This document shows positions 26,895-64,000 of a stretch of 64,000 nt of DNA, piece by piece; position 1 is the first letter of the stretch; every line of letters begins with the position of its first letter. The stretch comes from Bispira polyomma (Eukaryota). The notes below the pieces were generated by a model, which was not told the DNA's origin, ran no database searches, and saw only the letters and a list, made by a program, of their open reading frames with translations. The DNA is taken from the NCBI GenBank assembly GCA_965649765.1, contig OZ287748.1, positions 79,794,001 to 79,858,000 of the forward strand, written 5' to 3'. Both the position numbers and the translations under genes were made by a program.

Positions 26895-27230
26895 TTACTC
26901 TGTTACAAGTTGACTACACTGATTCTGGCTTCCTCTCCAATTACTACACTGAAAGCACAGACGTCCAGTGGCTGCTGGTCCATTGTGAATTTGAGCACCA
27001 CAGACATTACACAACATCATATTTGGTGCTGCAAGTTTTGTATGGCTAGCACACAACTTTGGCTTCACCCGAGTGACCTGATTTGGAGTCCAGACCCCAC
27101 AAATGACACACTTTTCGGAGTTCTTTCCACCACCAGGGCCAAACTTGAATTTGGTGGGAGCATCACAGAACACGCATAGATGGTATTCAGTAGCATTAAA
27201 AGCTGACACTGTCTTGGTACACCGCAGGCT
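26895..27230 (-). CDS. Terminal exon of the NACHT/TEP1-like gene: Cys/His-rich zinc cluster (PHF5A/Rds3-like ligand pattern)
   Basis: tttatacag acceptor, phase 0; SLRCTK..CVFC..CVIC..CASH..CNVC..CFQC..QCSQLVTE*. Candidate AATAAA at 26118-26123. Confidence 0.8.
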   Translation of the reverse strand, partial: SLRCTKTVSAFNATEYHLCVFCDAPTKFKFGPGGGKNSEKCVICGVWTPNQVTRVKPKLCASHTKLAAPNMMLCNVCGAQIHNGPAATGRLCFQCSNWRGSQNQCSQLVTE

Positions 27231-27394: not shown

Positions 27395-30210
27395 TAACAT
27401 AACATAACATATTGCATTTGATATTGCGCATTTTTACAATTCTGTTTCAAATGCGCATTTACATGTAAGTCTACTTGTAATACTTGTCAAAGAGATATTT
27501 CTTAACTTTTTTCCTAAACAGTTTTAGATTGTTACAGTCCTTGATGTTGCAGGGTAACTCATTCCACAATGATGGGCCGCTCACACTGAATGATCTTGAT
27601 GCAAAAGTGTGTCGGCTTGTTTTAGGTACATGAAGATTGTTTGAGAAAGTCGAGGATCTGAGTCCTTCTCTGAACACTGGTTTTTGAGTCAGCAGGTTTT
27701 GCAAATATTCTGGAGCATTTTCTTGCGGGCAATTGTACACAAGCACCATAATTAAGCGTCCCTTGAAAAGGGCGCTTATTTAGTTTCACCCCTGGTTTCC
27801 TCACCGCCGCCGCCGCATGGTCTTCCTTGAATATCTCCTTCAATATTATCTGCATCAAAATTATTTTTGGCAGTTCTCTTAACCAGGAGTGGGAAATTTT
27901 TTTGATATTCTTGGCTTTGAACTTTGGCCTACTTAAATGTCAGGTGACCCTGGGGGTGTAAAAGTGCTTGTCACTAGGTTTTCTCAAAAAGTATTCATCA
28001 TAGCTTAGTTAAATTTGGTATGTACCTTGGTAAGGCAATTTTCAGGACAGGAGACGCTGATGAGATTAATCGGATGATAATTGACCGATTGCCAACCGAT
28101 TGATTTTTATTGAAATGCGAAAAATCGGTACTTTTTTGCTATCTCGGAAACTATTGGGATTTCGGCTTTTTCTTGGTATAAGTTATTCATCTACTTTTTG
28201 ATTTTATGTATGATGTAAAAATTTCACAGTTCTAAGTCCAGTACTCAATGAGTACCGAGTACTTCAAACGAGTATTTTGCTCTATTTTGCTCTATCTTGC
28301 ACTGTTATCAACTTTTCTTTTGAAGTACTTGTCATAGTTCAATGAAATTTTCCATGCACATTGCAAATACCAAAGCATAGATGTCCGTAAATTTTTAGAT
28401 CAATCTGGTGATAATTGACTGATTGACAGGGTCGATCAATCATACAAAATGGGGAAAAAAATGTGTTGATGGGTGCTTTTTTGAGCGTGTGAGGATTTTT
28501 TTTATTTTTAATTTTAGACCAGTACATGTAGCGCGTAACTTTTAAAGAATAGCCAGAATTTTTATTTATTTTTTACCCCATCCAAAAATATGCGATCGTT
28601 ACTGATATAAAACGATTTTAATTTCAAAAATTTTAAAAATTAAGGTTTTTTTTTAAATGTCCATTATCTCTGAAACGGTGCTAGATAGAGCGATTTCGAG
28701 CTCATTTTCGACCCACAGGGTTGATTTTGCTTGTACATAAATTTTTAAGAAATTTTCAATTGTGGCGGCCATCTTGAATTTCTGCGTCTTTTTCGAAAAT
28801 GTCAATTATCTCGGAAACGGTGCTAGATAGAGCGATTTCGAGCTCATTTTCGACCCACAGGATTGATTTTGCTTATATGTAAACTTTTAAAAAAATTTCA
28901 ATTTTGGCGGCCATCTTGAATTTCAGTATCTTTTTTGAAAATGTCAGTTATCTCGGAAACGGTGCTAGATAGAACGATTTCAAGCTCATTTTCGACCCAC
29001 AGGGTTGATTTTGCTTATAAGTAAACTTTTAAAAAATTTTCAGTTTTGGCGGCCATTTTGAATTTCTGCGTCTTTTTTGAAAATGTCAGTTATTTCGGAA
29101 ACGGTGCTAGAGAGAGCGATTTCGAGCTCATTTTCGATCCACAGGGTTGATTTTACTTATATGTAATCTCTCAAAAAAATTTTAATTTTGGCGGCCATCT
29201 TGAATTTCTGGGTCTTTTTCGAAAATGTCATTTATCTTGGAAACGGTGCTAGATAGAGCGATCTCAAGCTCCTTTTCGACTCATAGGGCTGATTTTTCTT
29301 TTATGTAAATTTTTATAGTAATTTTTGATTTGGGCAACCATCTTCAATTTCTGCGTCTTTTTAGAAAATGTCTGTTATCTCGGAAATGGTGATCCTTTTC
29401 GAGCTTACATTGACCAAAAGTGCTGATTCTGCTTATATGTCAACTTTTAAACAATATCAAACCTTGTACACTAAACAATTTCATTATTATTTCAACTTTA
29501 GGGACGCTTCGTTTTTGTTATCAAAAATCGTATTCTAGTTTTGAATTCAATCCTGGCAGCAATTGGTAGCCAGTGAAGTAGCTTTCTGGATTCAGTCGAG
29601 CTTTCATATTTTGTCCTGTTAAGTACTAATTTGGCAGCTATATTTTAAACTCTTTGGAATTTCTTGATTGAGTTTTGTGGTAAACCAACAGTACACTATT
29701 GCAAAAATCGAGATGTGACATTACTAAGCCTAGAACTAGTGTGTGTGTTGCTTCCGTTGTAAGGGTGGATCTGATGTTTCTAATTCGGTGAATGTTTAGC
29801 ATAGCTACTTTGCATTTATGGGTAATATGTTGTTTGAAGTTGAGGTGGTTATCCAAATAGACTCCTAGATACTTAATGTCAGCGCTTGAATTAACATCTT
29901 CACCATTCACTTTTAAACTATGTAAGAAACATTTTTTGAGTTGCTTTGGATGGCCAAACAGGATGAATTCAGTTTTAGAGCTGTTCATTTTAAGACGGTT
30001 GGAATCCATCCACAATTTTATGTCCTCAGCACAATTTTCTAATGATCTAAGAGTGGTGGCTTCTGCTGAGATGTTGTTGGCTGAGAATGACAATTTGATT
30101 GCATGGTCGTCTGCATATCCGTGCAGTGACATATCAGCTGGAACTACGTATTTCAGGGTACTTGCATAGCTAGAGTGGAGAGTTGGACCTGCACAACTGC
30201 CCTGCGGTAC
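27395..30210 (-). mobile_element. 5'-truncated L2 LINE interrupted by a Helentron-associated element
   Basis: RT motifs VPQGS, HGYADD, KYLG; C-terminus SFSVSGPSLWNELP..KKYLF; (ATGTT)n tail. The frame ARIEFK-I-MVLVY is restored when 27753-29539 is removed. Confidence 0.9.
27753..29539 (+). mobile_element. Helentron-associated non-autonomous element (HINE/DINE-1-like), copy A, with a 142-bp tandem array
   Basis: 5' subTIR AAGCGTCCCT within a hairpin, (GCC)n, 142-bp repeats at about 28655-29450, 3' subTIR AGGGACGCTT, CTAGT terminus; inserted in a T run without TSD. Confidence 0.85.
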
Positions 30211-34799: not shown

Positions 34800-34872
34800 C
34801 ATTGCATGCTTGACTCTGAGCATCTGGGGTGTACTGAAAGATCTAAAGTCATTCCTCAGAAAATTCAGCAAT
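34800..34872 (-). CDS. NACHT/TEP1-like gene, penultimate exon (LLNFLRNDFRSFSTPQMLRVKHAM)
   Basis: ttttccag acceptor and gtaagt donor; phase 2 in, phase 0 out, matching both neighbouring exons. Confidence 0.8.
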
Positions 34873-35730: not shown

Positions 35731-35879
35731 CCAACTTTATCTTTTGCATTTTCTAAATGGTATGGCAAATCCAGGGCAGTGCAGCTCTTGTCCTGGCAGA
35801 CATCTTTGTAATATGCAGCTAGAAGACTGTGCCATGTGGTCTGAACTCTGCCTGTTGACAAGACCTCTTTCTGTACAGC
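35731..35879 (-). CDS. NACHT/TEP1-like gene exon (AVQKEVL..WHSLLAAYY..LDLPYHLENAKDKV)
   Basis: AG/GT boundaries; H..LA.Y and LPYHL motifs typical of the post-NACHT helical region of TEP1/NWD proteins; in frame with 59766-59969. Confidence 0.85.
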
Positions 35880-59765: not shown

Positions 59766-59969
59766 CTGAAGAATTGTGTTGTGAAAGAACTGAATGCGAG
59801 GCTCTCCGGTGTGCCACACTGTGATCATGCGTATCAGAGGTTTAAGCTGTCTCCTCAAAGTTGCCCAAATCACGGGGGGTGCTTCTGTTTTGTTTTTAAA
59901 GTCACCGAGTAAACCAGGAATGTGAGACTCTGGGAGTCCATCCATGGAGAAGCAAATCAAAGCCAGCAC
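59766..59969 (-). CDS. NACHT/TEP1-like gene exon (winged-helix region)
   Basis: AG|VLALICFSMDGLPES..PPVIWATLRRQLKPLI..FFHNTILQ|GT; 68 codons, phase 0-0. Confidence 0.9.
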
Positions 59970-63247: not shown

Positions 63248-63460
63248 CTTTAGCATGCATTCTGTTTCATCCTCATGCAGCAACCTTTGGAGCACCAACT
63301 CAAACAATCCATTCAAATCTGGAGGTAGAGACTCTACTTTGTGGGTCAAAGTTCTGAAGTCTCCATGGACACGCAGCTCCTCACAAGCTATGGACAGCCA
63401 CAGAGGGTTAGCTGACCCAAGGTGAGAGACTAGAGTGGCCAGCTGGGCAGAGTCCAGTGT
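63248..63460 (-). CDS. NACHT/TEP1-like gene exon (helical domain after NACHT)
   Basis: AG|TLDSAQLATL..SANPLWLSIACEELRVHGDF..LPPDLNGLFELVLQRL..MLK|GT; 71 codons. The gene continues beyond the window. Confidence 0.9.
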
Positions 63461-63592
63461 CTGCAGGAAAATAGATACAGTAAACATGCAGCTCCTCACA
63501 AGATATGGACAGCCACAGAGGGTTAGCTGAGCCAAAGTGAGGGACTAGAGTGGCCAGCTGGGCAGAGTCCAGTGTCTGTAGGAAAATACTGT
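63461..63592 (-). repeat. Tandem duplicate of the acceptor and 5' part of the 63248-63460 exon
   Basis: Near-identical copy at an offset of 115 nt, so out of frame. Confidence 0.85.
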
Positions 63593-64000
63593 ATAACATC
63601 TATTATCTCAATTATTCGATTTTATGAACCAATTTTCCAAAAAAGTATTCCTTCCCTATATTATCTTTACAGTACAACACATATTATCCAAACTTCTATT
63701 GCATTCTTCAATTACATGTTTTCACTGTCACTGAAAAATAATTTTTTTTTTGCATTTTTAACATTTTAAGGTGAGTTTGAAGAGATAGATTTTAAGCTTT
63801 TTCCGTAACCTATAAAATGTTTTGAGTGATTTAAGCTCAACTGGGAGACTATTCTACAACATAGGGGCTGCAACAGAGAAGCTCTAGATCCAGCACCCTT
63901 GGTAGGTTTTACAGAGGAAAAAGAGTATAACCTCTGTACAAACTTCTATTTTCTGCCTTATAATGAGTAAAATGAGTTCATCAAATTGACAATTCAGCAC

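Follow-up and report, generated by a model that had tools for sequence, protein, structure and literature searches.

A predicted TEP1/NWD1-group NACHT protein ending in a putative zinc-binding domain in Bispira polyomma and a Pocillopora coral

Proteins of the TEP1/NWD1 group of STAND ATPases usually carry WD40 propellers behind their NACHT module, and the locus treated here raises the question of what else may occupy this position. It lies in a stretch of 64,000 nucleotides of Bispira polyomma (contig OZ287748.1, positions 79,794,001 to 79,858,000; G000:C1:79794001-79858000 in our numbering of this 1.035 Gb animal genome), hereafter called the window, whose minus strand holds the last five exons of a gene with a 111-amino-acid terminal domain containing 12 putative zinc ligands. 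A preliminary description of the window had read this ending as a PHF5A/Rds3-like triple zinc cluster, serving as sensor or decoy of a NACHT protein. The analysis reported here, in which the spliced gene model was searched exon by exon, assigns the predicted product of the complete gene of 17 exons to the TEP1/NWD1 group of STAND proteins, and suggests with a probability of about 0.55 that it acts as an immune-type NADase-NACHT switch under the control of its zinc domain. The backbone belongs to a known STAND group, whereas the terminal zinc domain and the combination as a whole appear to be new.

Gene structure and the coral orthologue

Every splice site of the five minus-strand exons originally joined into one open frame (Table 1) is where it was placed, acceptors reading AG and donors GT; in phases 0/0/2/0 the exons run into a phase-0 acceptor at 27230, and the final TAA ends at 26895. 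Twelve further exons were found upstream of the window, all within 15.5 kb, so that the 17 exons remain in phase throughout, with zero internal stops, and encode a protein of about 857-860 amino acids. The order of its domains is DUF4062, linker, NACHT, winged helix, short helical domain and the 111-amino-acid zinc domain. PF13271 (DUF4062) scores above the cut-off at C1:79873106-79873255, exon-wise profiles match AAA_16 (E=1e-3), NACHT (E=4e-3) and NPHP3_N (E=0.02), and the Walker A (GESGIGKS) and Walker B (LIVDG) motifs are both intact. Upstream exons with TROVE, DUF4062 or NACHT had been anticipated; the last two were recovered, but TROVE was not, as PF05731 has no match on C1 and the TROVE matches of the genome map to C4, C6 and C9.

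The terminal product does contain the 12-ligand ending first described, including KCVIC and a terminal CSQLV, with ligands at C4, C19/C22, C41/C44, C60/H63, C74/C77, C92/C95 and C105. The genome has one copy of the exon, which is identical across DNA contigs of two samples (all three sequencing runs have the character of DNA). A survey of homologues, as the preliminary description had suggested, was productive: five other animals, picked up by a word search and a large profile search, have the exon at 32-54% identity, and all 12 ligands, including the histidine of the third pair, are invariant in the six species. Every homologue contig shows a phase-0 acceptor just 5′ of an LRC motif and a stop a few codons past the last cysteine, the proteins ending within about six residues of that ligand. 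Against the closest homologue, 32 of 59 conserved residues are encoded by a different synonymous codon. The zinc exon is thus no chance reading frame, because the ligands and the places of acceptor and stop are kept in five homologues, and the common start at a phase-0 acceptor implies that it depends on upstream exons. The family has no Pfam model, and neither the terminal domain nor its combination with DUF4062 and NACHT was found in Pfam or in the literature searched. Pfam scans of the exon and all six homologues returned only weak zinc-ribbon and RING matches, the ESM Atlas gave nothing at or above 0.9 for the domain, and scans of JGI metagenomes found nothing. Two other candidates were discarded, namely the ribosomal proteins bL32/bL31 from the PDB sequence search, which are chance matches, and P0006 from the large search, a bacterial-type repeat protein.

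One of the homologues comes from a Pocillopora coral, the downstream neighbour of the gene clustering at 90% with P. meandrina SLC15A4 (CAH3151665.1). A single coral contig (L045) carries the gene in 9.3 kb except for the first exon, which lies on L052, and its order of DUF4062, NACHT, exon A, exon B, fused exons C and D, and zinc exon is the order of B. polyomma, with the last four introns at identical phase-0 positions. Moreover, the P. meandrina assembly GCA_942486045.1 includes a deposited model of 817 amino acids, with DUF4062 and AAA_16 matches, that ends on the stop of the zinc exon; the coral protein is deposited, and no description of it was found in the literature searched. The shared exon order and introns, together with the ending of the deposited model, argue that the DUF4062-NACHT-zinc fusion is real and common to the coral and B. 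polyomma. The same data bear on the idea that the zinc exon is part of another transcript and that the NACHT gene ends elsewhere. The long, repeat-filled introns of B. polyomma, and junctions predicted from sequence, would allow for it, but the compact coral gene, the independent gene model and the phase-0 acceptor just before LRC in all homologues make it extremely improbable.

The placement of the zinc domain where a TEP1/NWD1-type gene usually has its WD40 repeats is likewise borne out by coral exon order, phases and the ending of the public model. In six species the zinc exon is followed directly by a stop. The next coding sequence found downstream on the same strand in B. polyomma is an unrelated copy of dCMP deaminase (DCTD), and therefore no WD40 exons follow the zinc exon; in the coral, the next gene is SLC15A4/PTR2. 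No WD40 exon was found between the zinc exon and the next downstream gene in either species, and no WD40 match occurs near the locus among the at least 150 scored matches listed. A true TEP1, with TROVE, DUF4062 and WD40, is encoded separately at C6:61.86-61.94 Mb, as is an ordinary PHF5A at C6:47.64 Mb.

Fold of the terminal domain

In PHF5A, five CxxC pairs are permuted over three zinc sites (1+4, 2+5, and 3 with the two single cysteines) to form a trefoil knot whose stem is made of the N- and C-terminal strands, and only Rds3 had the same fold in that study (PMC5458519). The zinc domain shares the order and count of these ligands, a cysteine, five pairs and a cysteine, and its helix-type and knuckle-type pairs alternate likewise. 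When anchored on the ligands, PHF5 flanks fit the zinc family better than shuffles (z 4.3), and all seven ligand blocks lean positive (z 1.4-2.2).

On the other hand, the anchored PHF5 score is about -1 to -2, as compared to 24-52 within the zinc family, and the true order of blocks ranks 15th of 120 permutations. The KCVIC block, offered earlier as a PHF5 signature, matches the fourth PHF5 pair more closely than the second and loses most of its value as evidence. This preference and the permutation rank indicate that most of the PHF5 signal is generic treble-clef character. No match to Pfam PF03660 or to PDB entries of PHF5A/Rds3 appeared at E≤10, and HHalign gave PHF5 a probability of 4-10% (global, 1.3%). 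The AlphaFold models, either from a single sequence (an all-beta artefact) or from six sequences, both reached a pLDDT of 49 with no fold match, and fold searches on such models are uninformative. The profile check proposed at the outset did not point to PHF5A. What stands of the PHF5-like fold is the ligand order and pair alternation; a significant match in Pfam, PDB, HHalign or structure searches is missing, and the domain should not be classed as PF03660.

A quite conceivable alternative is that the domain is unrelated to PHF5A, and consists of treble clefs that pair neighbouring ligands without a knot (C41/C44 with C60/H63, C74/C77 with C92/C95, and C19/C22 with C4 and C105), resembling FCS/MYM fingers or the Cys-rich NOA36/FAM76. 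Knuckle and helix pairs are 15-17 and 13-17 residues apart, as is usual in treble clefs that are self-contained, and only 12 and 10 apart in PHF5; the loop between pairs 1 and 2 measures 11-18 residues instead of 3. The best non-ribosomal PDB profile match is the FCS finger of PHC1 (2l8e, positions 37-63, E=0.17), the nearest Atlas entry is NOA36 (0.79), and FAM76 appears among the structure hits with a template modelling (TM) score of 0.32, both under threshold; the block-order rank also fits this alternative, the PHF5 signal being then mostly a generic helix/knuckle alternation. Against it, however, PHF5/Rds3 is laid out in just this way (PMC5458519), a lone cysteine standing at each end of exactly five pairs in a helix-knuckle-helix-knuckle-helix series whose terminal strands are hydrophobic, and no FCS, NOA36 or FAM76 Pfam match was obtained at E≤10. 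The domain may comprise three treble-clef zinc sites, with the first and last cysteines closing a ring. The knotted PHF5A/Rds3 pairing (1+4, 2+5, 3 with the single cysteines) is put forward tentatively, at slightly under even odds; an unknotted ring, in which neighbouring pairs form the three treble clefs, is rather unlikely, and another arrangement more doubtful still. A second family with a PHF5-like layout, either knotted or unknotted, would bear on the origin of the knot.

Function, polymorphism and alternative roles

DUF4062 has only recently been established as a TIR-like NADase; its activity in human TEP1 depends on E1008, and it is active in the bacterial anti-phage Swarozyc system as well (Osinski et al., doi 10.64898/2026.05.01.722283). 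The first exon matches the TEP1-TIR structure 11gz (E=1e-4), in whose chain positions 115, 83 and 15 correspond to E1008, R976 and R908, a self-consistent numbering. The coral motif SITHME aligns to SVTEME of TEP1, placing its glutamate on E1008, and the arginine of an ERYGW motif falls on R976. SITHME is present in the B. polyomma gene as well, so the glutamate is kept in both species; the position of R908 is a threonine, as it is in the active Klebsiella enzyme. By family, the N-terminal domain is a predicted TIR-like NADase, in which the residues matching E1008 and R976 of TEP1 are kept.

For WD40-bearing members, the proposal is that the WD40 part senses a signal, NACHT oligomerises and the NADase becomes active (Osinski et al., doi 10.64898/2026.05.01.722283). 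By analogy with STAND proteins of the APAF-1 type, the zinc domain would replace the propellers as the inhibitory and ligand-sensing part, keeping the ATPase off until a pathogen or damage signal is bound. Its release would let NACHT oligomerise and cluster the DUF4062 domains, which would hydrolyse NAD+ and so produce a death or defence signal. In this small version of the architecture (about 820-860 amino acids), one candidate sensor of some 100 residues would stand in for large WD40 propellers, and the activation model is therefore testable by deleting or swapping a single exon.

Variation in corals offers a further view of the domain. Among Pocillopora-type samples, which may mix cryptic species, 36 distinct versions of the last 78 residues were counted. 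Of these positions 32 are variable, and the ligands are fixed in all but one version. Six DNA haplotypes segregate at 19 non-synonymous and 3 synonymous sites, a ratio of non-synonymous to synonymous polymorphism (pN/pS) of about 1.5. Coral exon A, compared between L045 and contigs L048 and L050, shows 8 non-synonymous and 0 synonymous differences plus a 6-nt indel, and two introns near these exons are 98-99.7% identical. A variable zinc domain makes the gene a candidate coral immune locus, and the data fit a fast-evolving immune gene without proving one. Of the initial sensor-or-decoy proposal, the sensor half is plausible in view of position and polymorphism.

Several observations weigh against the NADase-NACHT switch, in addition to the PHF5 comparisons given above. 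The pN/pS ratio is not significantly above neutral (binomial p=0.28, six haplotypes), and the NACHT-core exons show a similar excess of amino-acid over silent changes (L045 against L048 and L050), so the zinc domain is not alone in this excess. The alignment that places E1008 and R976, obtained from the coral exon, is a weak one (E=0.14), though in agreement with motif and numbering. The NADase activity of this protein is itself a prediction, as are the B. polyomma splice junctions, which include introns of 24 kb and 7.6 kb. Many NLRs belong to expanded families, and the zinc-domain NACHT gene is single-copy. Finally, none of the full-length proteins NWD1, NWD2 and NPHP3 showed activity in vitro (Osinski et al., doi 10.64898/2026.05.01.722283).

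These points lead to the main functional rival, a scaffold with a housekeeping or developmental function, in the manner of NWD1 or NPHP3, with a silent NADase and the zinc domain as a constitutive protein- or RNA-binding module. A single-copy gene kept from corals to B. polyomma with conserved introns would suit it, and so would the lack of NADase activity in three of the four human DUF4062-NACHT proteins (doi 10.64898/2026.05.01.722283). The catalytic glutamate is kept in both species, however, and the high amino-acid polymorphism of the Pocillopora samples is unusual for a scaffold, which leaves this rival improbable, if by no means negligible. The other half of the initial proposal, an integrated decoy mimicking spliceosomal PHF5A and trapping pathogen effectors aimed at SF3b, has the STAND sensor position and the PHF5A-like ligand layout in its favour. 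Profile methods detect no likeness to PHF5A, itself an almost unvarying protein, whose surface the domain is therefore unlikely to mimic. The domain is ancient and not a recent capture; it is common to corals and B. polyomma, lies far from PHF5A, and is devoid of its basic C-terminal helix. A decoy is thus highly improbable.

The preferred NADase-NACHT switch has a more specific form, an old animal immune receptor whose switch is controlled by a knotted PHF5/Rds3-type domain and which is diversifying in reef corals; taken as a whole, this form is unlikely. We know of no use of the PHF5/Rds3 knot outside the spliceosome, and if this form were true it would be the first; the sensor would moreover be a non-repeat one on which diversifying selection acts in reef corals.

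Locus features, paralogues and known systems

The coordinates of the gene are collected in Table 1.

Table 1. Exons and other features of the zinc-domain NACHT gene, in window numbering, which is continued upstream of the window (add 79,794,000 for G000:C1).
Feature	Position	Strand	Remarks
DUF4062/linker exon	79483-79193	minus	holds first in-frame ATG 79474, the presumed start codon
DUF4062/linker exon	78819-78725	minus	
DUF4062/linker exon	78201-78112	minus	
DUF4062/linker exon	77578-77468	minus	SITHME motif
DUF4062/linker exon	72038-71921	minus	
DUF4062/linker exon	71201-71106	minus	
DUF4062/linker exon	70724-70616	minus	
NACHT exon	70163-70017	minus	
NACHT exon	69007-68892	minus	Walker A
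NACHT exon	67951-67846	minus	
NACHT exon	66187-66063	minus	Walker B
NACHT exon	64773-64570	minus	
Intron through which the gene exits the window	63461..64000	minus	12 exons beyond
Exon A, post-NACHT helical domain, NPLWL motif	63248..63460	minus	44% identity to coral orthologue (E=6e-17)
Exon B, winged-helix region, FFH at end	59766..59969	minus	41% identity to coral orthologue
Exon C, helical domain past winged helix, HxxLAxY..LPYHL-type motif	35731..35879	minus	
Exon D, end of shortened HD2-like helical domain	34800..34872	minus	joined to exon C in coral
Terminal coding exon, 111-amino-acid domain	26895..27230	minus	12 putative zinc ligands and stop codon

Next to exon A lies a partial tandem duplicate of its start (63480..63575, minus), with its own AG acceptor and ending near the real one; it keeps 84% amino-acid identity over the first 32 codons and is probably unused. 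High-copy repeats, including reverse-transcriptase fragments of long interspersed elements (LINEs), occupy intron positions 27650-29620 and 63048-62275, and the coral intron between the linker exons contains a long tandem repeat array (L045:2480-4170). The downstream DCTD copy (about 20470-12750, minus) looks degenerate, with a frame break between its CHAE motif (13011) and the following motif and a serine in place of a zinc-ligand cysteine (PSNEC for PCNEC). A local duplication within this region has left near-identical segments at 18344-18087 and 15370-15113.

Exon A has two paralogues on C2 and one on C3. Paralogues with DUF4062 and/or NACHT-helical regions map to C2:14.047-14.062 Mb (plus), C2:66.80-66.82 Mb (minus), C3:28.14 Mb (plus), C4:24.94 Mb, C4:2.68 Mb and C6:61.39 Mb. 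TROVE has no match near those on C2, C3, C4 and C6:61.39 Mb, nor does the zinc profile match near the DUF4062-NACHT paralogues of C2 and C3; the C-terminal domains of all these paralogues could be other unusual sensors.

With respect to known systems, the protein follows TEP1, NWD1, NWD2 and NPHP3 in the order of a TIR-like DUF4062, a NACHT with Walker A and B motifs, a winged helix and a helical domain, and it keeps the residues matching E1008 and R976 of TEP1. Unlike them, it lacks TROVE/vWA as well as any WD40 or TPR array, its helical domain is short and directly followed by the 111-amino-acid zinc domain, and its length is about 860 amino acids. PHF5A/Rds3 (PF03660) resembles the zinc domain in its single cysteine, five pairs and single cysteine, in hydrophobic N- and C-terminal segments, in the residues ahead of the last cysteine (6-9 in the zinc family, 9 in PHF5) and, in animal PHF5A, in an aromatic residue three positions past the second pair (Y36). 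It differs in that the third pair of the zinc family is CxxH, in the first five linkers (14-18, 11-18, 15-17, 10-11 and 13-17 residues, against 11, 3, 12, 8 and 10), and in the basic C-terminal helix, which the fast-evolving, STAND-fused zinc domain lacks. The FCS/MYM treble clef of PHC1 (2l8e) shares a CxxCG-x-aromatic-x-P segment followed by RxC at similar spacing, but the match is confined to a single site, has CxxH at its end instead of CxxxC, and leaves the terminal single cysteines unexplained. The bacterial anti-phage systems Swarozyc and, as reported, Evangelion also combine a DUF4062 NADase effector with a C-terminal auxiliary domain. In Swarozyc, this domain senses the phage portal, and an STFTD motif occupies the R908 position as in the new protein; the system is, however, prokaryotic, lacks NACHT, and has a winged helix as auxiliary domain instead of a zinc-bound module.
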